Shown: in pieces, positions 1,232 through 36,566 of the stretch
Layout: each line of letters starts with the position of its first letter
Position numbering within the stretch: the stretch's first letter is position 1
Position numbers and translations under genes: made by a program
Notes under the pieces: generated by a model
The model's input: only the letters and a program-made list of their open reading frames with translations
What the model was told of the DNA's origin: nothing
The model's database searches: none
Origin: Octopus bimaculoides
Taxonomy: Eukaryota
Direction: 5' to 3'
Assembly (NCBI RefSeq): GCF_001194135.2
Contig: NC_068999.1
Coordinates: forward strand, 23,661,024 to 23,725,023
Length of the DNA stretch: 64,000 nucleotides

Positions 1232-1331
1232 CCTGTTCCCTTGGTGATCTTGATGCTGACACTGAGTATTTTCAACGGAAAACTATAAAACAACGAACTT
1301 TGTTTAATCACTTGGGAAGGCACTTTATCAA
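1232..1331 (+). CDS. SHANK: Shank internal exon, linker just upstream of the PDZ domain (phase 1 in, phase 2 out)
   Basis: Acceptor ttgttttgtttcag ends 1231; donor gtaagt at 1332. Only one open frame: CSLGDLDADTEYFQRKTIKQRTLFNHLGRHFI. RTLFNH recalls the vertebrate Shank pre-PDZ KRLFRH. The phase-2 end joins exon 38676 in frame (..RHFIN-NYAPRAV). Confidence 0.7.
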
Positions 1332-13707: not shown

Positions 13708-16402
13708 GTGCTCCTGTGTTTCGCTTATTTTTTGTCGTTTTACTACATAAAGGTCACCAACTGTCTACCCTGAAGAATTACTGATGGCACATGCCTGGTG
13801 TAAATAGATCATGAAGAGCACACTCCAGAAGATTGTGAAGAAGCTATAGAGAATTTTTTTATTTAGTCAAGTTTCATCAATTTTATATTATGTGAATCTA
13901 AAATTTTTTTTTGCATTCCTGATCTTTCTGATGTCTAAGGATGGATATTGATGTGTTTGAGTCTGTTTTCTGGAGGATTGAAGAGGCAAATTTACATTAT
14001 CTTGTCTTACTCGTTTTGCCCCAGCCAAATTTGTCTTTTATATGCTCAAAGAGAACGATAATTTTCTTAAATAGTGATCAAATTACGTTATAATGCTTTT
14101 AATGCATTTAGGGAAGGCCATTTGCTTAGCTGATATAGTTTTTTGTGAGGTAGTGAACATTTGTAAACAAAATGTATTTTGTCTCAGTCAAAAGTGCAAT
14201 AAAACACCTCTTTTGCCCCCACCCCTATACTTTGCTGAACTGATTTTCTGTCCAATTTCAAGTGGTACTAAATATGAATAAAACCGAATTTTAATTCGAA
14301 TTATTTTGAAATTTAATTCGAAATATTTTGAAATTTTAGTATAAATATGCGAAAAATGTAATGAATAAATTTAGAAAATGTTCGTAGACTTTATATCAAT
14401 AATTCACTTGTGTTGCAAAAAAAAAGGAGAAAAGAAAGATAAAAGTTTTATATAATATAAAATGTGGTATTTTATCAAATGAGTAGTTAATTAAATGGAT
14501 AGCTGCAGTTAATTACGAGTTGTAGAACAAACGCTTTTTTTTTTACAGTTAATAACTGGTTTGAGAATGAAATCAAAATTGTAAGTCAAAATGTTCGCTC
14601 TGTCACCTGTCTAGCCTCACACTTTATATAAAGGAGAAAAAGAACAACTTTCGTTAGAGCTGAATAGTGTCTTTTAAGTCTATTGTCAGTACCAAATTTT
14701 ATTGATGTCAGCCTTTTTTTATTATACAGACAGACATCTACAGTTTCTAAAAATAAAAGTAAAATACATCAACAAAAAAATCCCCCCAGCTCTCACTAGT
14801 AAAATTCAGGGCAACTATCTTTTGATGTAGTCGTTAATCGACATTCTAGAATTTAAAACTTTTAAAATTTATTTTACTCTTTACTCTTGTTTTCTTTCAT
14901 TGCTTCAACTATGCCTATATATCTTTATTAGATACTTATAATCAGATACAAAATTTAATTATTATTAATTATTATAGTTTAGTTCTTTTCATTTTTAAAA
15001 AAGCAATGATTGTTTTATATACAACCTTTTTTATTGTCTAAACGCATTCATCTTGTTTTAAACTTAATATTTAAAATAAAACGTCTCGGTGTAGTTGAGA
15101 ATGAAATTGTGTTCGGGATGTAACTGGGTCCTATGTCTTTTAGAAATCAAGCGTCATTTTAAAAACAAAGTTACTTTAAAATCAATATGCTTATAAGCAG
15201 CATAAGACTATTGGAAAGTGTGATACTGTTAAACTAAGAAGAAAATTTATAGTATCCCGTTAATCCCAATTAATAACAAAAATCAGTTGCAGATAATGTG
15301 TTATCTAAGAAAGGATTTAATGCTTGGCAACAGAGGTGGACGGCTGTGAAAGGGTTGTTTGTTAGCTTTCTGATAGTTTAGTCTAGTTTTATTTTTAGTA
15401 TTGATAATCTATACTTTGAAACAATATCTGCTAGTAAAAGTAGACAAAAATAAAATTAAATAAAACATTTGACACGTCATGCTGCAAATTGGTTACAGGT
15501 GACTAATTAGTTTACCTGGCCATGGCAGTTGCTGGCCGCTGAAGCTGCCATCCAGTAAACTGGAGAAACTGCAACATATTGGTTAGGACAGGCTTCATGA
15601 AAAATTTCCAGCTCCTTTTAAATATGTAGCATATACTAAGTATAAGAACATTTAATATGTCCTCAAAGCTAAAGCAGTGGAGCGCTAAAGAAAGTATAAT
15701 GATAATTTGGAAGTTTAAAAAAAAATACTGACTTGCTACTTGTAACTGATTTATTTATTACCCTGGCAACAAGTAGCTGTTTCGCCATCTATCTACCTTC
15801 ACCCTTTCTTTCATTGATATGGTTTCGTCAAACATCTATTTCACGGCTACTTTTCTGTTACAGGTCTCCCTTACCTTTTGCTGATTATTTTAACTCGGAA
15901 ATAACTTACATTGTTAACATTTGATGCCATTAATCACCCACTCTTCTCTCTCTTTCCTTTACAATACTACCTGTCCATTTACTAATCGTTAATAACAAAC
16001 TTGTTCCATAGAGCTCTGGACCTGTATATTGACATTTATTGATTACTTTCACACAGGACTTCGTTTCGAGGTCGGAAAAGAAAATTCATCTAAGAAGGAT
16101 ACTTAGGTGAAGCTTCAAGAATATTCTCGTTTTACTTTTTTTCTCTTTTTACTTTCAAAATAATCATATTTGGTCGATATTTAGATGAAAGTTAACTACA
16201 AAAGTTTTTTTTTCTTTTGCTCCTTTCCAGAAGAACTTTCGACTTTCATTCGTTAAAATATTTATTGGTAGTATTGGTACTCGTCTTTGAGTTCTGTAAT
16301 AGATGAAGAGACTAGTAATTAATAAGAGAGGAAAATGGTGGGGGATAAAAAATCAACTATAACTAACGAATAGTTATTGTAGTCGATGTTTACATATTTT
16401 TA

Positions 16403-17637
16403 ATGAAAATGACTCAAAGGGCTTTGAAGAAAAAAAATGTTGGGGGAAAATTCATTGTAAATTCTCAGGAGGACGATTTACCAGTAGATATTTCCAATTA
16501 TAGTTTTGAGAATTCACCGAAGCTAACAAATGGTTCAAACTCGAAAACACCATCATTCCGAAGTGATCTCATTCATCCAGGGTTTGTATTTTTAAAATCT
16601 CGATTGAAAAAAAAATCTGTGATTTCTAAAGCTGATACAAATGAGAAAATTCATGCAGATCCATGTCGTCCATTGTTTCAACTAAAGAAAAAACAGAGTC
16701 CTGATTTAAATGGAGAAGATATTTTCGTGATCACCCCAATCGATGTTGAAAATAATGTAAACAACAACAGCTCTTCTGAAGGTTTCAATTCATTAAAAGA
16801 ACAAACAACTAACGATAGTAGATGTCCTGACTCAATACCTTGTACCTTAGATAATAGAGTTACCAGGTATGTTCTACCCGAAAATGTAGAGGAGGAAGAT
16901 TCTGGGAGGGGAGTTTCTGAAAATTCCGTCTCTGACATAGATTGGCAAGATAAGACGACGTCACATAGAGAAACAGCGACGTCACGTCAGGTAAAAAACG
17001 ACACACCTATTAATTACTTTTCAATCACTAACAGGCCGTCAACTGTTCACGACCCACCTTTAACTTCACAGCGTAACTCGTTCCACCAGCAACAACCACA
17101 CATGTCTCCTTGGCCACTTTCAAACCAACCTTTAAAAATATCAACACAACGTAAAATTTCGAAGCCTTCAGGGGAATTTATTTTAGTCGGACAATACGAA
17201 TCCAGACATGAACCGTTACAATATGCTCCATCTCCTTTAAGTGATTCCAGGGGCAAATATTCCAGCATGCCTTCGTTAGCGATACTTGGAAACAATTCTA
17301 AGGAGGAGAAAAAATTAAAAAAGATATTGAAGAAAGAAAAAAAGAAAGAAGAAAAACGGATGAAAAAAGATATGAAAAACAAAGATTCGTTTCCAAGTTT
17401 TACTTTACCTCACAATACGAAAATTCACAGACCTTATACAGTTTACGAGAAACCAAGGCCTGAATGGAAATTAACCCCTGTCCCTATCTCCATAGAAGAG
17501 CCCTTGTATGCTGTTCCCATCATTTATGACAAACCTAAAATAGACCATTATGCTAGTAGCCCCGATTTATTAAGATTACAGCAGATATATAACATTGGGT
17601 CGCCTGAATGGTTACCCCAACCTGTTGATAACAACAG
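16403..17637 (+). CDS. SHANK: Putative alternative first coding exon of Shank (411 aa low-complexity N-terminus with Lys-rich block and EPLYA motif)
   Basis: 412-codon ORF whose stop falls inside a consensus donor (AAC AG|gtgagt at 17638). In-frame upstream TAA at 16364-16366. Phase 2 matches the PDZ exon at 38676. Confidence 0.75.
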
Positions 17638-17691
17638 GTGAGTATTTTTTTCCCTCCATTCTTTTGGTCCCTCAGTGTTTTTATTTAAATT

Positions 17692-17732
<41 letters not shown>

Positions 17733-18914
17733 CTCTTTTTTATACTGTGTTTGTGTGTGTGTGTCCCCGTCCTTATTGTACATTCTCATGTGTATATTTT
17801 TCACACAAGATACAGGTGGCTTGTTAAGTTCTGTTCCAACCTAGTTCACCTACTAATGTTTTTTTATTTTATTTTCTAACTGCTATAATTACTTCCAGTT
17901 GTTAATTGTGTAATGTTAATGTAAAATACAATTTCCCAAACTAACAATTAAATGGTACAAGATCGGTAGGACTACATTTAATTATTAGAATTGTAAAGTT
18001 TGCATTAAAACACTCACCATAAAAATGGCTCGAAATTCAGAATGATGATAATATGACCTAAATTAATTTCGGTTCTAAAATCTTTCTCCTTTTAGCACCA
18101 GAACAACATTAACTAGATGGTTAATGATTAGCTCTATTTCGGCTCTGATGGAGCAGAACTGTAGTCGAAATCACCCCAGCGTTGTCTCACCTGTTTGTTG
18201 TTGTTGTTGTTGCTTAAGCCCAGAGTCGGTCATGATTGAGACTTGACGTATGATCAAAGGCATTCTTACCGTGACTATCCCATCTATTTTCAAGTTTGTC
18301 AAATGCTTAGTTATTCTGAGACAATATAGGTGTGGTATAAGGTTAGGTGGACGGGTTGTTTATTAGAGTTTGTCTAGAGAATAGGAGCGGCAATGTATTT
18401 TAGAAATACATAATGGGTAAATATTATGTGTGGGTGAATAGATATTTGGGCGTAAATTATTAATGAATGAGAGCAGCACACATTGTCAACAAAAAGCTGA
18501 TCACCATGAGGCAAAGTGTTTAATTATGACAGCAAAAGATATTTAGTAACACACACATTTAATAACAGTTTGACTCAGTTTCTTATGACTTACTCCTGCC
18601 AATGTTTTGAGTGTCACATTCTTTCGTTTGTTCACTCACTCGTGAGTGCGTATGTATAGACACACACACACAAGTTAGATGATGGGACCACAAAGTCTCT
18701 TAAATAAGGAGATACACAGAATATATTTGGTTTAGCGTAAAATATTTGTTTAAAAACAAAACGTCCAGTTATTGTCTAGAGAACCTCAAGGTACAAGCTT
18801 ATTGATTTCTCATCCAGGCTCTGATCAGGAATTGTAGTGCTTGAAACCTATTGGTTTACAAACTTTTGGATATTAGTTGGATGGTCTAACGCTCGCGCGC
18901 GCGTACATATAATC

Positions 18915-19180
18915 ACGCCTGTGTGGCTGTGTGGTATGAAGTTTACTTCCCAACCACATGGTTCTGGGTTCAGTCCTACTGCGTGGCATCTTGGGCAAAT
19001 ATCTTCTATAGCCTCAGGCCAACCAAAGCCTTGTTAGACGGAAACTAAAAGCAGCCCATCGTATATACATTTATGTAAATGTATACACTTGTTTGTTCCC
19101 ACTACCACTCGACAACTGGTGTTGGTGTGTTTACATCCCTGAACGTAGTTGTTCGGCAAAAGAAATGCAAAGTATAGATA
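18915..19180 (+). mobile_element. SINE family A with internal deletions
   Basis: gtggctgtgtggtatgaagtttacttcccaaccacatggttctgggttcagtcc...ttgggcaaat...gacaactggtgttggtgtgtttacatccc. Confidence 0.8.
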
Positions 19181-19209
19181 CATATATACACGGCCATGTA
19201 ATCACACAC

Positions 19210-19380
19210 GTACTTTTCTTGGACTATACTTTTCCTTCTCTCCGGACCATTCTTTCCGACGAAGATCCATGCTCAAGACGTCACACACCTTTTTTCCATC
19301 TTAACCTGAGCGTCGACCTAACATATTCAATGTACGTCGTTTTGACTTTTGTTGTTCTTATTTTTGATTTGCCGACACAC
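19210..19380 (+). mobile_element. Penelope-like pseudo-LTR relic with a decayed hammerhead motif
   Basis: CCGACGA-a-gatccatgctc-AAGACGTC at 19256-19282 (GAAA core mutated). Confidence 0.45.
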
Positions 19381-20213
19381 GCACACACAAAAGACAATAC
19401 TAGAGGGAAGGGCAAGTTAGATAGATTGATATTAAAAAGAACAAAGCAGAAAGTTTGACAAATATGGTATTACTTTAATACTTGAGATGAGAGTCTCTTA
19501 CCAGGAAAAAAAATTAAATAACTACAAAGAGAGAAATAAATTGAGGAAATTGATTNNNNNNNNNNGCAAAATTGCATTAAAAAAATTTCAAAGGGAACGG
19601 AGGATGCAAGAGGAGGTTAAGGTCGACAAACGAGGGTGACTGTCATTTTATGGGGTTGGAATGAGAAGGTAATAAGGGGCTTGTTTTCGTATGGAGACAT
19701 GTATCAGAATGTTTCTGTACATGGAAGCATGCAAAAGAAACAACGGTGTAGGTATGTGTATGTGTGGGTGCGGTTGTGTTGGTTGGTGGGATGGTGGATC
19801 TTGGTGTATATGTGTGTATTTTAAGTTTTTTGCGTGGGCAATGTGAAAAGTGTATATGCAAAGCTGTGTGTATGAAAATAAAATTATTGAAATACTTCTA
19901 CATAATATATACATATGTGTATACACACACACACACACACACACACACGCTCACTTTCTCTTACGTGTGTGTATTTATATGACAGAAAGAATTAATGAAG
20001 TCAAAGCTATACATAGTATGAGGCACAAGATAGCAATTTCACGTGTGAATACTTCTATTTAATTTCTCTTTAAAGACACCCATATTTATACACACACAAC
20101 CATGTGTGTGTGTGGTAAGGAAGGATTGGTGTGGTAAGGAATTCTTGTCAAAAATACATTCGAAATCTATGCATGTGTGTGTGTATTTATATAGATATTA
20201 AAGTATATTGATA

Positions 20214-20290
<77 letters not shown>

Positions 20291-21284
20291 AATAATAAGG
20301 AGAATAGAGATTTTTCACATCCATAAATTTTAACTGTTATTTACAGCATATTCTCCAGACCTACACATGTTTCATCTGCAGCGAATGCACATTATATATA
20401 TATATGGGTATTAATGTACCTTTAAAGTCTAAAAAGTACAACCACATTCCATAATGTAGCTCTCAGTGCACAATTGATTGTGTATGTAAAGGACGATAAA
20501 ATGGTTCTAGCAGGAGTACCTTGTGTTACAAGTTTCCTCCATCAGGGATGACCTCTTCGGCATATCTCATGTTTACAGAAGTTGTGAGTTCATGTTCTGT
20601 GGGTAGCCTTCAGCATTTTTCCATTCATAGGGTTTTTGTAACTCAATTTTCAGTGTCCCATTCACTAGCATAGCAAAAGTGTGTGCCGCTCAGAGTGGCC
20701 CTTCCGTTTTCCGCCCCCACCCCACAAAAAACATTGCCCACAACAGGATGAAAAGTACCACCCCTACCATTCCCCTCCGCTAAGCTAGTAGCCCCATTAT
20801 TTATAGCTTTATCTTTTTATAGTTCCACGACTAAAAATAGATACATGTGTATCTATATATATAAAACTGTGAATGTGTGTCTGTCTGTCCGTATGTGTGC
20901 ATCACAAAAACTCGAGAACTACCCAATCGATTTCATTCATATTTTATACATGGGCCAAAAATATTTTCAACTTCTTGTCTAATGTGAGCCCGTGGCGATC
21001 TCTTATACTGTTTCCGTACTTCATGTCAAAAGCAAAACAATAACATCACTATTAATACTTTCACTATTATATGGTTTAAATTTCAATTACTTTCATTGTG
21101 TATCTATGCATATTAGTTTCATTTTTATTACTTTCAATATGTATTTATATACATGTTTGTATATATATATATATATAAATAATAATAATATAAATAATAT
21201 ATATAAATATATGCATATATACATACATATATGTACATACCTACATATATATATATGTGTGTGTGTGTGTACAAAAACATGCAT

Positions 21285-21720
21285 ATATGGGTACAGTACA
21301 TCAAAAGAACGTTAAAAAACAATGAGAAACGAAAGCATAGAAAACGATTTTTTTTTCGAACAATAGAAAAAACAAACAGAGAAACGAGACAATGCAACAT
21401 AAAGAATATTCCCCTTCATCAGTTGTCCCTGTTTCATCTCCTCTGCATTTCAAAGGTAAGGACAATACGTGACTTCGTTGAAACATTCATTCGCGCAAAT
21501 CAAATTTGGGATTTTTTGTGGAGGGTGAAAGTGTTAACAAAAACAGGACAGTGAGAACAAGACAGTAAAAACAAACGGTGAGGGCTGTTGAGCCAAGACG
21601 ATAGAAAAATTATTATGAATGCTAAGAAGACGGGCTATGAGAGGAGACAGGTAAAAGCACATCTTGTCTTTAGGAAAGAAATGGACAGGTGTCAGCGACG
21701 AGAGAGTCAAGAAGAAAAAG
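21285..21720 (-). mobile_element. Probable solo Penelope-like pseudo-LTR
   Basis: Begins like the terminal segment of the PLE at 25030-25150; minus strand contains ggacaaCTGATGAagggg. Confidence 0.4.
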
Positions 21721-22709
21721 TGAGAGATAGAGAGAGAAGGGGGGAATAGGGAAAGGATGGGAGATGAATGATGGATAATTTACTTATAAATTCTACATTC
21801 AGTTACTTTCTTATTACTTGACCATTCCCTTTCCTCTTCGAGAGAGAGATAAAACTCATCATTAAATGTCCATACTGGTATTGATTAGGCAGTCCAAGAG
21901 GAGCTTGCAAACTGCAGGACTGCATTAAGTTCCAATGTCTGTTTTGGCATGGTTTCTATGGCTAGACACCCTTTCTAACAGTTTGTTAATTCTCATTCTA
22001 AAGGACCATAGGAACACAACTCTTACTTCCCCTCACTCCTTTTCTCTTTTCTGTTTTTCATTTAATTTCTATTCTCTCAGCGTTTCTGACTTTTTCTCAT
22101 AGAGCACCTATGATTTTATTTTGAGCCTGAAAGATTACAGGATAGTACATGGCACACTATACAATCTCATCTGACTAATGTGACTGTTGTACTGTCAGAG
22201 CATGAAACTTGCAGCTGCTCACATTTAAACCCTTTGTTTATAAAAGTCTATGTGTATGTGTGTGAATTTACATAATAGGTACATTCAATTTGAAACAGCT
22301 GTAAGAGACCATCTGTACACCTTATTACTTCCTTCTTATGATCTATACTCATGTAGCTACTCAATCATCATGTCTAAAGATATAAATGCCACAATTGAAC
22401 CTGATACCAATGTTTTATACTTTTATGTATATATATGTTTATATTTGCATGTATGTGTGTAGTATGTATGTATAGTTGGCCCCTTCCTTCATATTGTAAC
22501 CTTTCACTGTTGAATATAAAGCTCCCCCACTCTATTGTAACCCCATTCAGCTGACAAGGTTCTTAGTCTTGCAAACAACATGGCAACCTCACTAATGTTG
22601 GTGCCATGAATATAAACACACTATACTCTGTAAAGGGGTTGGCTTAAGGATTGGTATCAAGCAATAGAAACCATGCCAGAGTAGACACTGCAGCATGACA
22701 CATTCCTCT

Positions 22710-23185
22710 TATAATGGAAGGCAAGGTTCTCGATATCGGTTGAATATCGCCTTCTCCCATTTAATTTCTTGTTATTTGTGTTGTTTAAGGCTCCAGCAGG
22801 CAAGGAAAGAAGTCTTAGGCAACACACAGATTCTCAAACAGTTTTATTTACACCATACACAAGGGTGAAAGTGTGTTGCTCTCTGTAGCTATCTCATGCA
22901 ATGTGATTTTGTCGTTCTTCGTCACGCAGGACATTGCCTCAGGAGAGACGACAAGCGGATTGGCCTAGAGGCCCAGCCAGGGAAGTGTGCTCTGCAAGCA
23001 GTCGCAGGGAAAAAGAGAGATCAAACCTCGCTGCTTGTTCCTTTTATTTAGTTTGCCATCGCAAGCCTTGTTGTGATCTCGCGCATGGCAAATGGATGCA
23101 GGTGAGGTCTCGCTCCAGTCTCAGAGATAGCAATGGCTGCCGCGAGATCTCATCCAATATGGTGCTGACTGCTTGAGCCGCCACA
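22710..23185 (-). mobile_element. Solo LTR (476 bp) inserted into an RTE 3'-tail element
   Basis: Minus strand TGTGGCGG...AATAAA...CCATTATA (CA>TA end); ctct target duplication at 22706-22709 and 23186-23189; CpG-rich; the interrupted tail element resumes on the far side. Confidence 0.65.
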
Positions 23186-23978
23186 CTCTCATCCATTGGG
23201 TTCTATTAAACCATCCAACCTATGCCAGCATGGAAGATGAATGATGGATAATTTACTTATAAATTCTACACTCAGTTACTTTTTTATCACTTGACCATTT
23301 CCTTTCCTCATCCACTAGTTTCTTTGAATATTCTTCTACTGCAGACTGACCAGCAAATAAAGTTGTTAGACAGTAGTAATCTTCCCTATGCTATATACTC
23401 TAACATATACAGACTAACATACTCTAACACTTGGTCATGTCTTGACCTCCCAGTACTGTGAATTTGGCAAATATATAGTACATCAGGGAAGGTAATTTGA
23501 TGTATGCGTTACCTACAATCCCACTATTGCTAGTTTTTGTTGCAGAATCTGAAAATCTACCATTATAACTTCAAAACTTATTCTCTGTAGAGGATGATTA
23601 GAGGTTAACTATTCCATTAAGTAATTCATTAATTGATTGATTTATTATGCATACAAGCCATTGTATAACATGGAAATACTTTGTAAAGCCATTTAAAACG
23701 TTTGTAAGTGAATAAAGTTGGATAAGAATATAATTTTTCATTGTTTATCTGACTGCTGTTATTCCCTATGATTAATGTACCAACCTATTGGTTGGTGATT
23801 AACCTTGGATTTACAGTTTGTACATATTGCTCAGTGTGTTTAACCTATATGGATTACTATATGCTTCACTGGACATTCTGCTAGCCAGGTTTATTGTATG
23901 GAGTATTGACTCAAGTATTCGCCTGGATTTCTTCAATTCCTATTTTCCTTCACTGTGCATTTATATATNNNNNNNNNN

Positions 23979-24009
<31 letters not shown>

Positions 24010-24914
24010 GTGTGTGTGTGTGTGTGTGTATAGATATATATATAAGAAGTTGAAAATGCACTGGGATTCATAAGAGATTTTCTATTTAAAAATTTTTAAA
24101 GACTTGACCAGTTTCACAGATTTCTCTGATTTTCAAAAGTTGAAATAGAAAGACATGAGGCGATGTCAAAAGTGTCTTGCTTCTGACTGGAGTTCAAAAT
24201 TTCTTTTGTTTTTATCGAGAGAACATAGCACAAATTAAGTATCTGGTTCTGATACAATTTGATTGGCCAAGGATGATCTCGTGATTAGGTTTAGAAATTT
24301 TTGTAACTATCTTGCTACATCCATTCTTTAATGCCATGTGTCAACATGTTACGTGCTGTAAGTTAAAGCTATCACGGTTGATTGAATGTGTCTTATAACA
24401 GTCTCAAACAATCAAGGCTCTCTGAATTTAATGTCAAGTGTGGTAGAGGATGTTCACATGATTAAGCTTAGAAAGTTTTGTAGGTTCCCAGCTCCGTCCA
24501 TGCATCAATATCTGTAACAAATTTGCTGGCCTTGTGCCTAAATTTGAAACCAATGTCATGTGAGAATATTTTTGCACTGAAAACTAAAGCTGACCCACTT
24601 GAGTGAACATATCTAGTGACAGTCCCTAACTATCAAATCTCTAAATTTAATCTGTCATGTGATAGAGTGGACAAGGGTTGTTCCTATGTAGCCCAGTGGC
24701 TGAATATTTATGCTTTGTATCTTATATATGTAGGTATAATATTTTGTTCTCCACTAAATTTGTGCATTAGTGTAATGTGAGAAAATGTGATTGTGTCCAA
24801 AGTATAGGTTGTTGGTGATTTAAAAATATTAGGAAATGCAAAACAACTTGAAAATGCATAGACACAGGTTTAATTGAAGAGTGAAATTAGTTCTGTCTTG
24901 GTTGTATTTATGCA

Positions 24915-24959
<45 letters not shown>

Positions 24960-25029
24960 TATATGAGTATATGCATATATATGTACATGTATGTACATAC
25001 CTTCATCTACATGTACATATAGATACATA

Positions 25030-26660
25030 TCTGGGTGCATGACGTTGCAAAAAACATGGACAAAATGATAAACAAGGTACAAAAAACAAGCAGGGCACAT
25101 AGAGAACATATCCTTCGTTTATTTGTGCTTGGTCTGTGGTCGTGCTTGACTGAACAAAAGTAAAGTGAGAAGACTTGGAATTTGGGAGAATTATTTTTTG
25201 CACATATGTCTGTGTCCTCTCAATGGGATCTGTCTAGTACTGGAGTCTTGTATTTGGTGAGATGAATAGTTAGTTTATTTCTCAGAGTGGGTTTTATTCG
25301 ACCTGCATAACAGCCTTTACATTTAATAACATATATTAAATTTCTTGACAAACAAGTTAAATGATTTTTTTTTATGATAAAAAATCTGTCATGATTTCAA
25401 TTCATGTTTTTTGTCTTCAATGAGATTGCTGCAAGGGGGTCTACACTTTTTGACTGTTGGTGTGGGATTTGTGGAAGGTAATTTAGTGCTGATGAGTAGT
25501 TTTTTGAAGAATTTTGAGTTGTCTTTAGCTTTTGATTATTTTGTATATTTCAAGTGCTTGTTTCATTATTGGGTCTTGTCTCAGTAGCAAAATATTCTGG
25601 TGGATAATGTGTTTTGAGGGTTGTGTGTTGTAATAAAGAGTAGAGTATAGGGTGTATCTGAAGTGTTTTTTTTTTTTGTTTTTCATAATTCTTCAATATC
25701 TATTGTGTTGGCATGTTGATGATTACAATTCCAAGAATGGTAGTTGAGTTTTACTGTCTTCCATTGTGAAGTTAATATTATTGTTTATGCAGATAATTAG
25801 GCTTTTGAAATCAATAAGCTGGTCAAAAGTGTGCGTCCACAAAATCACTCAGTCATCTAAATAACATTTCTAGTTTTCTAGTAAAGACTTATGGAAGTTG
25901 ATGCCATATTTTAACTTAGATTGTTCATATATCTGAACCTCCATATATACCATGACTTTATTGGCCTAAGTTGTAACAACTTTTGTACCCATCACAATCC
26001 TAGATATTTGCTTGTAAATATTGCCAAGGATGAATTTTAATCTTTCAATGATGAAACTTTTTCCAGTTCTGTCTGGAATTTTTCAAGCCAGAAACTTATC
26101 GCCTCTAGTCCATGTTGGTGCAGGATCATGGTATAGAAGTTTACTACATCAAATAGTACAATAATGTTGTCTTTGTAAACAGCTTTTGAGAGGTGGTTTA
26201 AGAGGTCCAGGTCATCCTTTACAAGACTCGGCATGTATTTTAAGATAGGTTCCAGTAATATATCTAATATACTGTCGAGTCAGTGTGTTTCACTTAGGAC
26301 CTGCTACAACTGATCTAAATTTAAGGTCAGTGAGATGTTGCATGTTTATATAATTAGAAGTTGATTCTTTACAGATTTGATTCTTATGAATTTTGGGGAG
26401 ACTGTAGAAGTAGCCAGTTTTGCAATCAAAATGAGTTAGGTAGTCAGTCACATTCTTTGTTTGTTAAACCATTTTGGTGTTGGTGAACACTCATTCAGTT
26501 TTGTCATCGTCTTTGATCTTTGGTAAATGTTTACCTTTTCATAATAGGTTGTATCATGTAGCAGAGATAATATAGCACTTTTGTAGCATTCAACATCCAT
26601 AATAATTACAGCCGTTCCTTTATCTGCTTCCTTAGTTTTAATGTCATTATTGTTTTTGAG
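25030..26660 (-). mobile_element. Degenerate Penelope-like retroelement (RT + GIY-YIG endonuclease)
   Basis: KEADKGTAVIIMD; KFRSVVAGP; VLFDVVNFYTMILHQHGLEAISFWL; NINFTMEDSKTQLPFLE; NLIYVIKCKGC; many stops and frameshifts. Confidence 0.85.
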
Positions 26661-27081
26661 TTCATGTATAATTCCCCATTCCTTTCAACTGGTATTAAGT
26701 TTGATTTTAGGGTGTGGTAGTTTTTTGTATGGGAAAGTGGAAATATATAGACATACATGGCTATGCTTTCCTCTGTGTGTGTGCGTGTGTGTGTTTATGT
26801 CACTCCATAAGGAGCAAAGGGCAAGTTTCCCCGTTTCTGTGGCATATATATATATACATATATATATGTTATGAGAGGTAATGGTGTCAAAAAGACCCAA
26901 AGGTGTCAGGTAATGCTGAGTAAGTGCTATGGACAGACTATAGTTAAGCTCCAGGTTCGGTGATTATGCAAATGAGGAGTCTAACATAGGTCATATGTCA
27001 GCATGTGTATATATACAAAGATTAACAGAATGAGATAAAAATCTAAGGCTGTAAAGATTTCAGAACACTTATAAATAGAAG

Positions 27082-27129
27082 GTCTTACAGCTATTTCCGG
27101 GATATTTTATATATCCCTTCATCGGAGAC
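27082..27129 (-). ncRNA. Minimal type I hammerhead ribozyme, variant core
   Basis: Minus strand: gtct-CCGATGA-a-gggatat ataaa atatccc-g-GAAA-t agct gt-A-agac. Confidence 0.6.
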
Positions 27130-27361
27130 AATGTGAGAAAATTACTTCAAAAAAACTCTCGATTCAATAACTCCGTTTACGAACTCTATGCTTGGAATGG
27201 CCAATTTTAAATACTATTGGAACTTAATCACAAGGTCAGGAATCTTATATGTATACCAAATTGCCTAAATAATGGAACTGAAAATACAATATCCCTGCAT
27301 ATCTCACGTCTATTTTCATTCCTCCACTTCACTCTCTATTGCTTAACCATTTTCTCACACC

Positions 27362-27409
27362 GTCTCCGATGAAGGGGAATATAAAATATCCCGGAAACTG
27401 CTGTAAGAC
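27362..27409 (+). ncRNA. Minimal type I hammerhead ribozyme, variant core
   Basis: gtct-CCGATGA-a-ggggaatat aaa atatccc-g-GAAAC-tgct-GTA-agac: stem I gtct/agac, stem II, 2-bp stem III, GUA cleavage triplet. Confidence 0.6.
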
Positions 27410-27494
27410 CTATTTATAAATGTTCTGAAATCATTACAGTCTTGGATTTTTATCTCATTCTTTTAATTTATTTATATATATATATATATATTTC

Positions 27495-27665
27495 TCCCTG
27501 AATGGGACTCTGACCTGCTGCAGAATTACTCATTTTTACTAGCTGAGTGGACAGGAGCAATGTGAAATGAAGTGTTTTGCTCAAAAACATAATGCATTGC
27601 CTGCTCCAGAAATCAAAACAACAATCATGATCATGAGTTCAACACCCTACCACTAAGCCATGTTC
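27495..27665 (-). mobile_element. tRNA-derived SINE (family D)
   Basis: Minus strand catggcttagtggtagggtgttgaactc...ttgctcctgtccactcagctagtaaaaatgagt; homologous to 31611. Confidence 0.65.
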
Positions 27666-27749
27666 CTTCACACACACACACATACACGTATGCATATGTA
27701 ATATATATATATATATATGAGTGAAGTAGCGCAACAAATGAACTGAAGT

Positions 27750-28125
27750 AGCACTCAGCTCATATAGTTGGATTTGTATTTATTAATAAGTTGTCTTATC
27801 TCCTTGTGTCACTTGAAGTTTTGTGCATGTGAAAAATACTTGACAAGCTATGTGTGTTATCTGATAGCAAATACTCTAAGCAGACTGGTGGAGGTCTACT
27901 CAAAGTCTTTTAATATTTGAAGAAATATTTCAAAATTACTGTAGGGAGTATTCAAGTTTTCAGATTGTATTTTTCTTCACAGTTCATTGATAGGGGGCAA
28001 AGAAAGACAGCAGAGCTTTAGATCAATTTATATTTAGGGATTTAAAACTTTAGGAAATGCAAAACAACTTGAAAATGCACACACACACACACACACACAG
28101 GTTTAATGGAAGAGTGAAATTAGTT
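27750..28125 (-). mobile_element. Penelope-like RT fragment
   Basis: Shares about 80 nt with 24820-24900; translation recalls the FTMDVKSLYT..ALKHF..LLRLAELVL region, highly degraded. Confidence 0.5.
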
Positions 28126-28299
28126 TAGAGTGGGAGAAGGAAAGATAAATGGAAAAAAAGAAGAGAAGCTTGCAAGGGTAAGGTGGAGGGATAAAATAAG
28201 GTAAGAGGGAGCAGATTAAGGATAAAAATGCTGTTACTGAAATAAGAGGGGTCAGTGTGTTAAAGGGAAAAAATGTTCACTTTTAATCATTTCTGTCAT

Positions 28300-28960
28300 G
28301 GTTCTGAAACTGAATATGAAATATTCTTTCTTTCTGTTTCTTTGAGCATGCATATCCATTATGTGCAGAGGTGCTGCACATTGATAAATATGTAATGAAA
28401 TGGCCCATTTTATTGAAATTGGTGTTGACCGGCTGTCCCTGCATATGTAGAAATATGCTTCAAGTATATTTGCAAAAGTGATCAGCCAAGTTTCTCTCAT
28501 TTCCCCAGTGTAAATACCATCCCAAAGTTTGAAGATGGTGCAATGTTTTAGGTTGGAAGATTTGCCTAAGTTTTGCGTGATGTGGTACTGTGACTTATGC
28601 CTAGTGATGGTTGTAGTGTTGTTAATGTTGGGAAAGGGGTTGCTATAATTTAAATGTTCTTCGGTGCTGTGGAGTTTTTAACTAGGAATTTGCTGAAGCT
28701 CCTATTTTTCTTGAAGGTGAGGAGAGGTGATGTGGGTAAGGTCAGAGCAGTTATGAGGTCAAAGAGTAGGATTTTGAAGCTGCAGATGTTCCAATGAGTG
28801 GGAAGTGAGAGCAGGTGGAATCTGATTTGTTGGAGGGTGGTAGCATAATAAATGGCCTTGGCTCAGTGGAATGTCAAGTCTACAATTGATCAAGTGTCCT
28901 ATCCATACATTAAGAAATTTGATGTTCTCGCATTCTGATTTGAAATTTGAAACAATGCTG
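28300..28960 (-). mobile_element. Penelope-like C-terminal/GIY-YIG fragment
   Basis: SPLLTFKKNRSFSKFLVK; YTGE..LADHF; QPVNTNFN. Confidence 0.6.
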
Positions 28961-29245
28961 CACAGTTGACAAGACCAAAGGCAGATTTAGTGTGCTCAGA
29001 GTAAAAGGGAAAATGGTGGAGATAGGAGTGGGGTTCTGGAAGTTTGTAGTGGACAGAGGTGGGCTGGTGGATATTGTTAATATCTATATACGTATATTTG
29101 TATGTGTGTATGTAATTATATTTTTCAGCTGCATTGAATTACTTTATCTCTAGATTTTTTTTGATACACAATTTATATTGTATTTCCTTCACACACACAC
29201 AGCACTTTGTCTAGATTTTTGATGCAATTTGTATTGTATTTCTTT

Positions 29246-29277
<32 letters not shown>

Positions 29278-29511
29278 TATCTCCCCATAACTAGACATGC
29301 TTTCATGGAAGACTGAACATAAAGAACACTACTTCAATAACAGTAATGTTTCTTTACAACCATCATGTGATGTCAAGACAAGGAGACATTAACACACACA
29401 CACAGATTGTTAGTTCTTTTACTATCATTTCATGACTTATTCTGTTATTTTACTGGTTACTGTAAGTATAAAATCTCTCAACATGGAATAGTAGTGTGTT
29501 GACTTTCTTAA

Positions 29512-29686
29512 CCCTTTAGCATCTAAACCAGTCACATTCAGCCTCTCACACCTACCCTACAATGTCATTTTAAAAATAAACAATCACATCATCAAAATCT
29601 CAAAGCTACAAGATAATGCATGTGTAATTCAAAGCAATGCAAATAAATAAGCATTGCATTTGACAGAATAATACAAATGCTAAAGA
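29512..29686 (-). mobile_element. TTAA-associated MITE copy
   Basis: ttaa+ccctttagcat...aaatgctaaaga; internal sequence is the reverse complement of the 36348 copy. Confidence 0.65.
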
Positions 29687-30009
29687 TTTATTCTTGGTGC
29701 TTTTACAAGTAATGTTTCTTTCTTTGATTTCTCTAATTTTTTAGTTACTAGTTAACCCATCTCAAGTTAGAATTAATTATCCCCATCCTTTTATTTCTAA
29801 ATTCAGTGTTTTAGAGGTTTACTTCATTATTCAAACTCCTCTGCTTGAGATTATTTGTCATAGATTGAATATTGGAATTTTTATCTACATTTAGTTTCTG
29901 TTAGGATATAAATAAGTAAAGATTGTTTTTTATCTGGTATAAGGGTTGTACTTGTGTCTATAAAAATAGACACAAGTACTACTTATATAAGAACATTCTT
30001 TAACCTATT

Positions 30010-30305
30010 TTAGAATTGTATCTATGAGAGTCTGCCAAATGTTGACCCAACTGAGGGACCAGCTATCCAGATTGACTGTACCCTGGTAGATAAAACAATT
30101 AAGGATATGAAGACAGGGAAAGCCCCTGGCTCATCAGGAATCACTGCAGAGATGCTTAAAATATCTGGCAGTGTGGATTATGGTCTAGTCACCCATAATG
30201 TAAATCAGGTGGTTCATGAAGGAGTCATACCTAATGACTGGTGTAGCAGCACCATAGTAAACTGCTACAAAGGTAAAGGTAATACCTTAGATAGAAATAA
30301 TTCAA
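30010..30305 (+). mobile_element. RTE LINE fragment (start of the RT domain)
   Basis: MKTGKAPGSSGITAEMLK..VIPNDWCSSTIVNCYKGKG; followed directly by an RTE 3' tail at 30306-30575. Confidence 0.85.
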
Positions 30306-31349
30306 ATGTTGGGCTTCTCGGAGGCAATGACCAAGACCTTTGGCATTGTCGTGCTTGAGAAGAAGACCTGCCAAGCTGAGCAAAATCGTAGTTGTGACAG
30401 ATACCGGTGTCACCCAAATGGCACTCTCAGAGTGGTTGGTGTTAGGAAGGGCATCCAGCCATAGAAAACCATGCCAAATCAGACTGGAGTCTGGTGCAGC
30501 CTTCCAGCATGCCAGCTCAGTCAACCCATTCAACCCATGCCAGCATGGACAACAGATGTTAAATGATGATGATGTTGTGCAGATTCATATATATATTTGT
30601 TTGCATATATGTATTTGTGTGTGTGTGTGCTTGTACACACACACACACACACATTCACATGGCCACAGCCTTAGGGATGAAGCATGTAAAAGAATATATG
30701 CACACACATGTGTGTGTATCTACGTATATATATATATTACACAAGGCACAGGCTTGGCTGTATGGTTTAGAAGTTTGCTTCTCAGTCACATGTTTTTGGG
30801 TTCAGTCCCAATCTTCTACTCTCTAGCCTTGGGCAGACCTAGGTTTTATGAGTCAATATAGTCAACAGAAACTGAAAGAAGACCATTGTATGTATGTGTG
30901 AGTGTATCAGTGCCTTCTTGTCTTGGCTCCATACATTAATTATAAATGAGTGTCACCATCATACAAGCGGTGTCCTTTGTTTTTAATCTTCTGTGAAAAC
31001 ATGTCCAGTTGGGGGGAAATATTACTTTACTTGGAAACAGGTGAGGGTTGGTGACAGGAAGGGTATCCAGCTATAGAAAATTGACTGCAACAAATTCTAA
31101 TCTATGTAAAAGTGGATGTTAAAATGATATATACTTATATATACTTAAAATATATATACTTCTATATATTTCATTATCATTATCTTTTTAAATCCACTTT
31201 TGCATGCTTGTTATAGGTCAGTTGGAATTTAAGGTAGATTTTTATACTCCCATACTTTTGCTATTGCCAGTATTAATCTGTTTCCAAACAAAGTAATATT
31301 TTCCTATGGTCGAATATATTTATACAGAAGGTAGTAAACAAAGGACACC

Positions 31350-32100
31350 ACTTAAATAACAGTGACAGATAGTATGATGCCTGTGTATGAACAGCAACAC
31401 TATAATGGTAGTGAGATGTGAACCCTGAATGCATAGTACATGCAACAACTAGAAAATAATGAAGCTAGTATTCTCCAGTGGATATCAGTGTGGATGTATG
31501 ACAAAATGCAAATGTGTTGAGAGAAAAATTAGGCATAAGAAGAATCAGATGTAGTGTGTAGGAGAGAAGGCTGCACTGGTATGGTTATATTTTGCATATG
31601 GATAGCAATAGAGGGTGCATGGCTAAGTGGTTATGATATTCAGCTCAAAATCATATGGTTTATGAGTTCGATACTGGTGAAGTATTGAGTATTTCAGCAA
31701 GATACTTTATTTCATGTTGCTCCAGTCCACTCAGCTGGCAAAGATGAGTTGTACCTGTATTTAAAAGAGCCAACTTTGTCACGTCTGTATTACACTGAAT
31801 CTCCCTGAGAACTATGTTAAGGGTATGTGTATCTGTGGCTGCTCAAGCAAGTTGTTCCATTGATCGGATCAACTGGAACCCTTGTCATTATAACCAACAA
31901 AAAGCCAGTTTTATGGATGACAACAGCTGTATAAAAAAAAGTGCCTGTTCCTTAAAGTGGATGAAACTTGTGAAAGCAGGAGACCTAGGAAGACATTGGA
32001 TGAAGTAGCGAAAACGTCTCAAAATATTTAGCTGCACAGTGAGAGGAACAAGATGATTAGCATTTTGCTGTGCTTGATAAGACCTGCCTACCATGGCAAA
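31350..32100 (+). mobile_element. RTE LINE fragment interrupted by SINE family D (31611-31850)
   Basis: REKLGIRRIRC..RRLHWYG before the SINE and MDDNSCIKK..RPRK after it. Confidence 0.7.
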
Positions 32101-32689
32101 ATTAAGATCCAAGAAGCATTGGACTTATATCTATACACTCTCTGGGTCCTGCCCCTGTACCCAATCCGTTTCCTGTACCCGGTCTGTCCCCATCAAGCTT
32201 TCCTTACCTTTCACCATGACTGGAGTGCAGCAGTTGCTTAATCAAATAACACATTTACATAGCAGAAATGATCATCATTATTACAATGGCAGCATCAGCT
32301 CACTAACACTGTGTAGCATGATTTTTGTCCTTGGGTAGCAACTGTAAAAAGTATGAAAAATGGCTAATATTTCCTTCAAACTTTGCTTTTCTTACATTTA
32401 TTCAAATCCCAAAGAATCCCTCTCAACACATGGCTATGATGCTCCTCCACTACTCCTGCTCATGATCAGAGATTCACATATTGTCAACCACTAAGAGACA
32501 TGCTCAAGTGGTTAAGGTCAAGCAACTGACAAAGCAAATTTGTGGTATTGAGCAGAATATTTACTATAACGACATTTCAGCTTCAGTAACTCAGCATTGA
32601 ATCATTCTGAAACATTGATGTCCAGGTCACAAAAGCAAAGTTTTAAGGGAATAGTAGTCATTTCCTTTGATTTCTGGCTATAAGCAAAT

Positions 32690-33325
32690 AGGAAAATAAC
32701 ACTTACTAACCAAAGAAAAAGAAAAAAAATTAATTTGTTACACAGTGTAAGCATCAACTGACAATAGAGCAGTTTAAATACCTTGGAGTTGTAGTCATGA
32801 GTGATGGAAATCAGAAGGCTGAATTGGATGCTAGAATCACAGGTGCTAACACAGTAATACTGCAGCTTCAGCATTCAATTCGTAAAAGAGAAGTTGATAA
32901 AAAAACCAAACTCGGTATCTTCAGTTTGGTCTCCATGCTTATCCCTACTTGTGGTCATAATTGTTGGGTAATGACCAAAGAATACACTTGCAAACACAAG
33001 TGGCCAAAATGGAGTTCCTCCAAAGGATCTTTTGTGTAGCCTTGAGGATCAAGGAGTCTCTTCGGGTTAAGTCACTACTTCTTTGCATTGAGAGGTCACA
33101 GCTCTGGAACTGTGGTACTACAAAATGTTGCAGGAAAGGATCACAAGCCGAACCAACTTGCAGGTGACCCGTGAGTAGACCACTAGTGAGATGGTTGGAT
33201 AATATCTCTAGTTTCTGTTGGTCACTCTTGGGAATCCAGTTTGAAAGTTTAATGAAGGTTGTTTCTAATAGGGTTGTATGGAGGAGGTGACCAAGGACTC
33301 CACTGCCACTGCCCTCCCAGGATTA
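32690..33325 (+). mobile_element. Rex3/Expander-like RTE LINE 3' fragment
   Basis: QFKYLGVVVMSDGNQKAELDARITGANTVILQLQHSI.KREVDKKTKLGIF..LIPTCGHNCWVMT..AKMEFLQRI..VKSLLLCIERSQLW. Confidence 0.75.
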
Positions 33326-33589
33326 GTGGTCAGTGAGACTGGGTGAATTGATGCGATAGACCCATAAGTGTGAGGGAATTTCAAAGAAGAAAAGTTCAGT
33401 ATAATAAGAAATTTTCAATTTCATAAACGAAAGTGAAAGGAATAGTAAGGAAAGAAAACAAAAAAATGAATTGAGGAAAGAGGGAGATAGAAAGAGAGAA
33501 AGATAAAGAGACAAAGGAAAGGATAAAAGGAAAAGAGTACTGAGAGAGCACAAACCTCCACTAAGGTAACACCAATGTCCTCTCAATGA

Positions 33590-33869
33590 TTAACCAGAGA
33601 TGATTTTTAAAATGAGAACATCTAAAATAAACTCAACTGCTCTCACAAATGAGAATACTAAAAATGAACCTGACCACTCCCAAAAATTAAGTAAAAAAAT
33701 AGGAAAAATAATCCAGAACCCTTGTCCGGTACTGGATCAATCCCAGTCACGTGGCCAAACATCTCTGAAAGTTTCATCCAAATCCATCCAGTGGTTCTTG
33801 AGATATCTTGTCCAAAGACAAACAAACAAACATTGCTGAAAACAATACCACTACCTTGGCGGAGGTAAT
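33590..33869 (+). mobile_element. Non-autonomous Helentron-like (HINE-type) element
   Basis: Ends gaaaacaataccactaccttggcggaggtaat (terminal GC hairpin); body aagtttcatccaaatccatccagtggttcttgagatatcttg followed by caaa repeats. Confidence 0.5.
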
Positions 33870-34004
33870 GAAACACATGAGGAAAATGGAGGTGAGAAAT
33901 AAATCTCAAGTCACTGTCCCTCATGGAATGAACCAAAAATTGAATGATTAACAGATGTAGAGATTTAGAGTGGTGTTAAGTTTAACCTTAATATTATATT
34001 TATT

Positions 34005-34190
34005 AAGGCAGTGAGTTGACATTATTGTTAGCACTCCAGGCAAAATGCTTAGTAATCTGTCTTCTCATTCTGAGTTCAAATTCTGTCGAGGTCAATTTTG
34101 CCTTTCCTCTTTTCAGGGTTGATAAAATAAGTACCAGCTGTAATTGATTTACCCCTCCCACAAACTTACTGACATTGTCCCTAGACTAGC
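34005..34190 (+). mobile_element. tRNA-derived SINE (family B, Meta/MESC-like central domain)
   Basis: ggcagtgagttg..gttagcactcc..gagttcaaattc..ttttgcctttcctcttttcagggttgataaaataagtaccag; further copies at 36060-36270, 43095-43270(-), 52960-53280, 54020-54210 and 3075-3145(-). Confidence 0.7.
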
Positions 34191-35049
34191 TTTGATCAAG
34201 TAAAACCCATGACATGACGAAGTTGTGACACAGAGATCTATTTTTTTGTCTAATCTGGACTAAATAGATCTCTGCTTAAATGAAACTCAAACTGCACACA
34301 CCTGCTGAATCATGTGGAATGCAGTGTGACAGCCTGGACAATCTGTTGCATTCTCTTCAGTGTCCAGTTTATTATGTATGTTGGTTATTTAAGCTCGAGC
34401 TGGATTTAATTGACCAGATCTATCATCCATGACTTCTCAGCCATGAACATTCAACATGTTTTCAAATATAATTTAATTTGGACAACACTATGAAATGTGT
34501 CTTCTTTGTGATGGTGAGATATTTAAATTCACTTGCATTTAACGAGGATATCCTATTTACCAAATTAATACTCTAAGCAACAAATTATACAATTTCAGTA
34601 TATTGTTGGTAATAAAGATTAATGGTTAAATTACACTTGAATGAATTATTAGACAAAAACAGAACCTTTTTATTTTATTTTATTGTTTTTACTTAGTACA
34701 TTTAGTGTACATGTATTGGTGTGACAGTCATGTAGCTTATTGCCAAGGAAGTTTTTTTTTTTTTTTTTTNNNNNNNNNNTTTTTTTTTTTTTTTCATTTT
34801 CCTTTGGCATTCTTAAATTAGTCAAATCCTTACATCTTGACATACTTTGAATTACTCAAAGATAACAACTAGGATCATGCTGGTACAGAAAAGAATTAAG
34901 TGGGTGACTCACAAGGCTAATGTTGCTGTTAATGCAAACAGTAAAGAGTTAATTATAATATGATAAAAATATAGAAACAGTATTATCAATACTTGGATAA
35001 AAATCGTTTTTTTTTTTTACAAATTTTATCTATCATGAATATAAATATA

Positions 35050-35445
35050 GGTGTAGCTGTGTGGTAATAAGGTTACTTCCCAACCACTTGATTCTAGGTT
35101 CACTTCCACTATGTGGCACTTTGGGTAAGTGTCTTCTATTATATCCTTGGGCTGACCAAAGCCTTGTGAGTGGATTTGGTAGATAGAAATTGTAAGAAGA
35201 CAGTTTTGTATGTATGTGTGTGTGCATGTGTCTTTGTGTCTGTGTTTGTTCCCCACTACTGCTTGACAATCAGTGTTGGTGTGTTTACATCCCTGTAACT
35301 TGGTGGTTCAGCAAAAGACACCTATAGAATAAGTACCTGACTCAATAAGAAAATAAGTACTGGGGTCGATTAGTCCAACTAAAAATTCCTCAAGGCAGTG
35401 CCCCAGCATGGCCATAGTCTAGTAACTGAGACACGTAAAAGAAAA
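35050..35445 (+). mobile_element. SINE family A, full length
   Basis: Head, gtggcactttgggtaagtgtcttc, microsatellite, tail ending ccccagcatggccatagtc..actgagacacgtaaaag. Confidence 0.85.
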
Positions 35446-36059
35446 GATATATTGAAGAATTTCATGACACGGAAAAATAAGATAAAATTGCACTAGAATC
35501 TCAACATTGATGGGCTTTAATTCATTGAATTAATAAAGATAATTTGAACATATTTGATTCTTTTGACATCAGTTATTTAACAACAAAATAGTGACTACTG
35601 TTGCTTTAACTCCTCTGAAAATGGAAGCTTCCAGAATAATTTTATTCATATCAAATGTTTAGTTTTATTCTACTTTTTACTAATTTTTTGAAATCAGAAT
35701 CAATAAAAAAGAATCCTAAGCAATTAATCAAGATTGGTGTTTTAAAAATTATGTAATTAACAAAACTGTGCAATTGTCCAGTAATGCAATTCGTCAGAGT
35801 GACTATATATGTGTGCATGCATGCTAATACATATGTTGCATTATATAGACATGATATGAATAAAGTTTGATATTTTATAAAATGAAATCACTAAAAATTG
35901 AGCCTTATCTGCTCCAGTCAAACGCATTACTAAACAAGAAGTATTTATTACAAAATGTATTTTATATGATGTTGCTCAGTTCGGTATTTTAGGACAATGA
36001 ACCTGTCTGCTATTAACAGAACTTTGTTTGAGATTTAATATTACCCAATCAAAAGCCAG

Positions 36060-36270
36060 TCAGCTGGAAGAATTGTTAGCACACTAAGCAAAATAGTGCT
36101 TAGCAGTATTTTATCTGTCTTTATGTTCTTAGTTCAAATTTTGCCAAGGCTGATTTTGTTAGTCATCCTTTCAGAGTTGATAAAATAAGCACCAGCTGAG
36201 CACTGGAGTTGATGTAATCGACTTAACCTCTCCCCTGAAATTGTTGGCCTTGTGCTAAAATTTGAAATAT
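36060..36270 (+). mobile_element. SINE family B
   Basis: ctggaagaattgttagcacactaagcaaaat..ttagttcaaattttgcc..catcctttcagagttgataaaataagcaccagctgagcactgg. Confidence 0.75.
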
Positions 36271-36347
36271 TACCTAATCAACCTTAACTCTGTTCAGGAA
36301 ATAAATCTACAATATCTGTTAAGTGAAACGTGTTCATAACACATTAA

Positions 36348-36566
36348 CCCTTTAGCATTCTGATTACTTTGTCAAATGTAATGCTTATTTATTCACATTT
36401 TTTGAATTACTCATGCATTATCTTATAGCTTTGAGATTCCAATGATGTGTTTGTTTAGTTTTTGAATGACATTGTCAGGTGGGTATGAGAGGCTGCATCT
36501 GGCCAGTTTGAATATAAAACGGGTAGAATATTTTGGCTGGATATGGCCAGTTTGATTGCTAAAAGG
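36348..36566 (+). mobile_element. TTAA-flanked MITE (piggyBac-like), complete
   Basis: ttaa|ccctttagcatt ... attgctaaaagg|ttaa: terminal inverted repeats and TTAA on both sides. Confidence 0.75.

Follow-up and report, generated by a model that had tools for sequence, protein, structure and literature searches.

An intron of a Shank gene of Octopus bimaculoides very probably harbors an internal transcription unit whose two starts are nested and whose products carry a replaced N-terminal head. The window analyzed in the present study is a stretch of 64,000 nt on contig NC_068999.1 (forward strand, positions 23,661,024 to 23,725,023; RefSeq assembly GCF_001194135.2), and positions are counted from its first letter. 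It has the composition of AT-rich animal DNA (roughly 35% GC; 30-43%). Only two of its open reading frames (ORFs) exceed 200 aa, the ORF 16403..17641 on the plus strand and the last exon of Shank. The first-pass annotation had described the former as an alternative first exon that replaces the Shank N-terminus, and this description is supported by the starts of RNA contigs, a closed leader, and an in-frame junction.

We propose the following model. The internal transcription unit would lie in the 37-kb intron that separates exon 1232-1331 from the first PDZ exon. Transcription from start 1 (~15501) would give a 2.1-kb first exon composed of a 0.9-kb uORF-rich leader and 409-411 codons. Transcription from start 2 (~17004-17035), which lies within the coding sequence, would give a short AUG-free leader followed by Met234 in the same frame. 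In both transcripts, the first exon would end at the donor 17637 and be spliced to 38676 in phase 2, as is the ordinary upstream exon. Since the donor is shared and the joint to 38676 is in frame, the products would be PDZ/proline-rich/SAM Shank proteins in which the usual N-terminal part is swapped for a head of 411 or approximately 178 residues. We speculate that this head retargets or retunes the PDZ-SAM scaffold. The features of the gene are listed in Table 1.

Table 1. Features of the Shank gene and of its internal transcription unit in the window.
Feature	Position	Strand	Evidence
Ordinary upstream coding exon (…KQRTLFNHLGRHFI-N)	1232..1331	+	RNA contigs X7, X8, X9
Putative core promoter 1: A/T-rich TATA-like stretch and CRE half-site ACGTCA (15474-15479)	15446..15500	+	Conservation in the octopod relative (L001); putative role
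5' leader of the long first exon	15501..16402	+	Contig starts and collinearity to 17637
Alternative first exon, coding part	16403..17637	+	ATGs at 16403 and 16409; RNA contigs, homologues
Three CRE-like sites (CGACGTCA, CGACGTCA, TCACGTCA) within the coding sequence	16956..16989	+	15-80 nt upstream of start 2; putative role
Second start zone (~17004-17035) and its first AUG (17102-17104; Met234, in frame)	17004..17104	+	Read-depth ramp, X29 contig
Intron (21 kb, GT..AG) from the alternative first exon to the PDZ exon	17638..38675	+	Junction 17637 to 38676 in RNA
First PDZ exon, common to both kinds of transcript	38676..38749	+	RNA; joint 38749 to 39738 in four runs
Second PDZ exon	39738..39859	+	Joint 38749 to 39738; contig end past 39859 matches 40822
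Third PDZ exon	40822..40993	+	Joint 39859 to 40822; Shank PDZ matches, E about 2e-20
90-nt exon (APEPPRRDPSTSLSFSKAKSKSFAEGMAEI)	41968..42057	+	Frame and homology; sole well-flanked candidate yielding 5007 nt
Last exon (3.3 kb), proline-rich region and SAM	44082..47395	+	SAM_1; acceptor 44082 placed by frame and homology (EKLDQTLAEYEV in P0003)

Judged by its domain content, the gene is Shank/ProSAP, with a Shank-type PDZ domain, a long proline-rich region, and a C-terminal SAM domain. The best PDB matches of the PDZ domain encoded by three exons were the PDZ domains of Shank1 and Shank3 (E = 2e-20). In the last-exon ORF, which ends with the TGA at 47395, SAM_1 (Pfam) was matched at residues 1010-1070 (E = 6.3e-17), and poly-proline tracts are visible in the translation. 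The last two exons are collinear with a transcript-derived homologue from a squid-like species (P0003), to which the last exon is 50% identical. The 90-nt exon was 93% identical to P0003 and is the most conserved segment with this homologue. The frame is kept without the 90-nt exon (4917 nt), and this exon could be an optional cassette. At ~45700-46300, the last exon encodes peptide tandem repeats (ENKPVVK three times and about seven 13-residue units, …DKPN..ATH.ET.), which differ from the squid-like homologue at the same place.

Other repeats were observed in and around the gene. Three tandem copies of a ~42-nt unit (GGCCAGTTTGCACATAAAACAAGTATATTTGGGCTGGATAT) occupy 950-1085, ~150 nt upstream of exon 1232-1331. 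A short interspersed repeat is present at 38966-39053, with similar copies near 11261-11400, 30340-30500, 37885-38190, 57116-57390, and 61334-61620. Its translations recur among the ORFs (…NPCQHG.W/QMLNDDDD…), and its RNA word depth reached about 59,000. This repeat looks like a highly transcribed SINE-type family spread through introns. Runs of N (assembly gaps) are found at 41476-41580 in an intron and at about 54850-55300 downstream of the gene.

The ORF 16403..17641 spans 412 codons from ATG to TGA and was read directly from the window. Reading of the sequence confirmed two statements of the first-pass annotation: an in-frame stop is present at 16364, and neither of the upstream AGs (16372-73 and 16381-82) has the phase required. 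The stop of the ORF sits within a consensus donor, AAC AAC AG/GTGAGT, which is cut between 17637 and 17638. The coding part of the alternative first exon is thus 1235 nt, or 411 codons plus 2 nt, and ends in phase 2. The acceptor of the first PDZ exon at 38676 reads tttcag/TAATTATGC. The codon across the joint is AG+T (Ser), followed by NYAPRAVTLRKTPNGYGFVLRGAK. Joining the coding part of the alternative first exon to the three PDZ exons, the 90-nt exon, and the last exon (Table 1) gave exactly 5007 nt, which encode 1668 aa with a single stop; the model proposed earlier, of the same length, was thereby reproduced exactly. The ATG at 16403, which had been taken as the start, opens the ORF. However, the second ATG, at 16409, probably serves as the conserved initiator, because M[TS]QRA[LI]KK stands at the very start of the homologues. 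The sequence from 16409 reads MTQRALKKK, and the squid-like homologue and two more distant homologues begin there.

Two positions in this exon departed from the reference. At 16781, all RNA runs have A for G (Gly127 to Ser), and at 17053, all RNA runs except X3 and X31, the latter from a sister species, have G for C (Asp217 to Glu). These differences look like polymorphisms or departures from the reference assembly and do not look like A-to-I editing. In the same-species RNA runs, A>G sites in the alternative first exon all stayed below 10%. A (CT)n/(CTAT)n microsatellite at 17690-17736, 50 nt 3' of the donor, attracts thousands of cross-mapping reads, and the contigs of an octopod relative stop at it.

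RNA evidence was obtained from public assemblies and raw RNA-seq reads of the same organism, and X31 represents the sister species. The junction 17637 to 38676 was detected in RNA contigs of four runs (X3, X7, X8, and X29), where it was met from either side, and in 21 raw reads (11 in X35 and 10 in X36; ~6% of each run was sampled). The X3 contig across this junction is 4245 nt long with a depth of 97. The first-pass annotation had named such junction reads as a check and splicing into a different gene as a possible refutation. The reads exist, and the target is the PDZ exon of Shank, an architecture shared by transcripts of the squid-like species.

The contigs with the ORF begin at 15501 in X7, 15510 in X3, and 15515 in X8, and from there they follow the genomic sequence collinearly as far as 17637. 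No splice entering the alternative first exon was found in the RNA contigs of these three runs, and a single unbranched contig leads from the ORF exon to the PDZ exons in X3 and X7. Together with the closed leader, these results uphold the earlier claim that the ORF is not a cassette after exon 1232. Both putative transcript 5' ends were placed from contig ends and a coverage ramp.

The exon previously called exon 1232 corresponds to exon 1232-1331. It ends in phase 2 ('AA'), and in RNA it is spliced directly to 38676, with the contigs continuing TAATTATGCTCCTCGG…. These contigs (X7, X8, and X9) have depths of 13-24 and reach 1.5 kb further 5'. They run 30 nt into 38676 unbranched, and no other downstream partner was found for exon 1331. 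X3 contains no contig for exon 1232-1331. Where both exons exist, the word depth was 31-105 for the ORF exon versus 13-24 for exon 1232-1331; contig depth is a rough guide only and a poor measure of abundance, and by this guide several RNA samples represented the alternative head at a depth no lower than that of the ordinary junction. In a wider run search, the ordinary exon was present in many other RNA runs, and, therefore, the two forms are not strictly co-distributed.

In one X7 contig, 19 non-genomic nt (ATGAAGTCGCAGGGTTGGG, ending GGG) precede 15501. No match to ATGAAGTCGCAGGGTTGGG was found within the 64-kb window. It was rejected as an upstream exon on this ground and because of its misfit with the AG at 15497-98. 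It is more likely a library artefact, which could be a library oligo or a template-switch remnant, than an exon outside the window. The contigs of X31 (organism C), which diverge by about 4.6% (63 differences in 1376 nt), cover 15200-17581 and run on upstream of 15501 at a similar depth. This signal may stem from pre-mRNA or carried-over DNA, or the sister species may start transcription further upstream.

The leader of the long form (902 nt) contains 11 short uORFs and 16 stops in the frame of the ORF, and all of its frames are closed. The ATG at 16403 is in a weak Kozak context. Because of the length of this leader, its 11 upstream AUGs (uAUGs), and the weak context of 16403, translation of the long form may be inefficient. 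Upstream of start 1, a block at the putative promoter is identical in the octopod relative (L001) at 81 of 85 nt (95%) versus 87% for the upstream flank. The ACGTCA located 27 nt upstream of start 1 falls within this block and is kept in L001. ACGTCA/TGACGT hexamers occur eight times in the 64-kb window; four of the eight lie at the two starts, and all four are kept in L001. The three hexamers at 16956-16989 double as codons (Thr-Ser), and coding constraint may explain their conservation. We speculate that CREB/ATF-type control is exerted through the conserved ACGTCA sites.

A word-indexed search of 5.8 billion clustered proteins with the ORF gave one match, P0001 (82% aa identity). This protein belongs to the octopod relative and is encoded on ~3-kb contigs (L001) collinear with 14625-17730. 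Nucleotide identity to L001 was 91% in the ORF and 91% in the leader. The ORF differs by only three indels (39, 3, and 3 nt), all of which are in-frame, whereas nine of the 11 indels in the leader are not multiples of 3. The dN/dS ratio was 0.41 overall, 0.63 in the N-terminal half, and 0.29 in the C-terminal half. The value for the N-terminal half shows only weak constraint, and the better-conserved C-terminal half is the part common to the long and short forms. Conservation of the ORF in related octopods, another check named in the first-pass annotation, was thus found in this relative at the levels of protein identity, dN/dS, and indels.

When 1.84 billion representatives were scanned exhaustively with HMMER, four further relatives were identified, namely P0002 (4.8e-28), P0003 (2.1e-23), and P0005 and P0006 (both ~7e-7). 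P0002 is an ORF of 555 aa in an ENA genome assembly. P0003 (1805 aa) derives from a 7.3-kb RNA-type contig and has PDZ (Pfam match 1.5e-11) and SAM after the head. Its head of 550 residues starts with MTQRALKKK and is followed by DDDE-S-DYAPRAVVLRKGPNGFGFVLRGAK. In the transcript of P0003 (L007), the leader is 501 nt long, and none of its frames is open. Four cluster mates are, like P0003, transcript-derived and full-length (1794-1809 aa), and all five proteins have the head, PDZ, and SAM, with the same head-to-PDZ joint, DDDE-S-DYAPRAV. Unspliced cluster mates end in …DDDERCVK before a stop, and the octopus counterpart ends in …NNR before a stop; therefore, the phase-2 intron is common to the squid-like species and octopus. 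The identity of the head to P0003 was 43%, versus 50% for the disordered last exon, and, therefore, the head evolves about as fast as that exon. P0005 and P0006 represent two more distant taxa (27-33% identity). P0006 ends on AAG/GTAGGT in phase 2, and in the P0005/P0006 comparison no PDZ exon was found within 10 kb on L006.

The first-pass annotation had suggested a mollusc- or cephalopod-specific isoform. The isoform is present in a squid-like species. Two more distant taxa carry the motifs, and the head module may be wider than cephalopods. P0004, a protein with G-patch repeats, was rejected as a head homologue because its match was of low complexity. A six-sequence profile found nothing new in the word-indexed protein search, in which the candidates were saturated by Lys-rich words, and the C-terminal block alone had no match in that search. 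No names for the head homologues were found in the protein collections.

Pfam identified no family in the head, and its only match was a chance match with an E-value of 0.85. In the AlphaFold model (two-sequence alignment), pLDDT was <50 for 371 of 412 residues, and one Lys/Glu-rich helix (residues 299-325) was confident. The head is therefore predicted to be an intrinsically disordered region with short linear motifs and one charged helix. The motifs common to all six sequences are M[TS]QRA[LI]KK at the very start, [KR]x[KR][YF]SS, the Lys/Glu-rich stretch, LPxxW…PIExVYxRP…LxxVPI, and Y[AS]SxPDL[LQ]R[LIV]xQ[IV]Y. EEEDSG[RK]G and EFIL[VM]GxY are extra motifs shared by coleoids. In the head, EFILVGxY, KYSSMPSL, LPxNW..PIExVY..PR..KLTxVPI, and YASxPDLLRxxQxY were noted, and most of the short motifs fall in the part common to both forms.

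These results bear on whether the head is translated. The transcripts may be real with an untranslated head, a regulatory or uORF-laden RNA from which protein is made from an AUG in or after the PDZ exons. The 902-nt leader with 11 uAUGs, the weak Kozak context of the first ATG, and a head that has no Pfam domain and is predicted to be disordered are consistent with such an RNA. However, the frame is open in lineages at 27-43% identity, with conserved motifs and the start MTQRA[LI]KK, and the indels of the ORF are in-frame only, unlike those of the leader. Moreover, the dN/dS values of 0.29-0.41 and the AUG-free leader ahead of Met234 in the short transcript argue for translation. We consider an untranslated head to be improbable and prefer a translated one.

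Start 2 was read from raw-read depth in three deep runs (X35-37). The depth was 0-3 over 15500-17003, increased in a ramp from ~17030 to 20-35, and held to 17637. The X29 contig (depth 543) covers 17103-17637 and 30 nt of the next exon. Read from this ramp, start 2 dominates in some samples. A sequence scan found no ATG between 17004 and 17101. The first AUG of the start-2 transcripts is M234, and, therefore, a head of ~178 residues is predicted.

The same coverage may be read in another way, with the ORF or its 3' 603 nt as an internal cassette that is entered, for example, at ttttcaatcactaacag/G between 17034 and 17035. This acceptor-like site has a good branch-point-like CACTAAC and is in phase 2, in frame with exon 1331, and the raw-read coverage of X35-37 begins near it. 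However, the coverage climbs over about 80 nt with no step, and X35 reads reach back collinearly to ~16990. Loose ends or clipped reads were not found at 17035 in runs that gave 10-11 reads for the 17637 junction. The contigs of exon 1331 lead only to 38676, and the AG is gone in the related octopod (AACAGG to AACCGG in L001). An acceptor upstream of the ATG would not match in phase and would be followed by intervening stops. A cassette is very improbable, and a second transcription start is a better reading than a cassette acceptor at 17033-34. A separate gene or a transposon-derived ORF in the intron, with splicing to PDZ as incidental read-through or chimerism, is barely credible: the head is unlike any known domain and lies 21 kb from the PDZ exon; however, the same in-frame junction occurred in every RNA run examined, a distant cephalopod-like species has the same fusion and intron phase in five or more transcript-derived proteins of full length, and the matches among 1.84 billion representatives were orthologue-like only, with no multi-copy family.

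Internal starts in scaffold genes have precedents. PDZ-start isoforms are known for Shank2 (ProSAP1) and Shank1B. They begin shortly before PDZ, without ANK and with or without SH3, and have only a few tens of unique residues. In contrast, the octopus head has a Lys/Glu helix and motifs that are not known from these forms. The unique N-termini of vertebrate Shank proteins are short. Homer1a is an activity-induced short scaffold isoform generated by intronic polyadenylation with the loss of a domain. The octopus isoform resembles Homer1a in that a postsynaptic scaffold gene yields an alternative transcript, possibly with CREB-type control. However, it probably arises by an internal start and not by intronic polyadenylation. 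In mice and humans, Shank3 has multiple intragenic promoters that generate isoforms differing in their domain composition (Wang et al. 2014, PMC4113141), and their use is brain-region-specific and activity-dependent (PMC4113141). The earlier statement that internal-promoter isoforms are established in vertebrate SHANK3 agrees with these findings. As with Shank3c/d, transcription of the octopus isoforms starts in an intron, and a first exon of their own is spliced to downstream exons that the other transcripts also contain. However, they differ in a unique part of 411 or 178 residues, deep conservation, and two nested starts. No sequence similarity was found between the octopus head and the first exons of vertebrate Shank3.

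A comparison with the N-PDZ structure of Shank3 (5izu) hints at a further property of the head. HMMER aligned the last head motif, LRLQQIYNIGSPEWL, with KRLFRHYTVGSYDSL of 5izu with one gap, and the two are equally far from the PDZ core. The aligned stretch reaches into the RLFRHYTVGSYD hairpin of 5izu, and the gain from this extension was <1 bit (74.4, compared with 73.6 for a chain of this protein that has the PDZ alone). RTLFNHLGRHF of the ordinary exon did not align to 5izu. The squid-like and distant homologues have YG, not YxxG. The alignment is no more than a hint that the head may supply a PDZ extension of its own, of the 5izu type.

A literature search on Shank in octopus or cephalopods found no description of isoforms; the comparative study that treats octopus Shank gives gene counts only (PMC9282427). 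A wider proposal sees in the head an ancient Shank front end, shared across molluscs or more widely across lophotrochozoans, with its own N-PDZ extension, altered GKAP/SAPAP binding, and CREB-type activity-dependent induction. We regard this proposal in its full form as rather unlikely. If true, the ancient front end would remodel the postsynaptic scaffold upon induction, in animals whose brains became complex independently of vertebrates.

Shank proteins act as master scaffolds at excitatory synapses, and much of the disease biology related to SHANK in vertebrates stems from the diversity of their isoforms. The present results suggest that an octopus Shank gene also uses internal promoters. 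The mechanism of an internal start is the same as that in vertebrates, and the long sequence-conserved head is what differs. Domain-based surveys of "synaptic gene number" would overlook the head isoform. The two starts, the motifs, the charged helix, and the CRE-like sites may provide handles on the diversification of scaffolds in an independently large-brained lineage.
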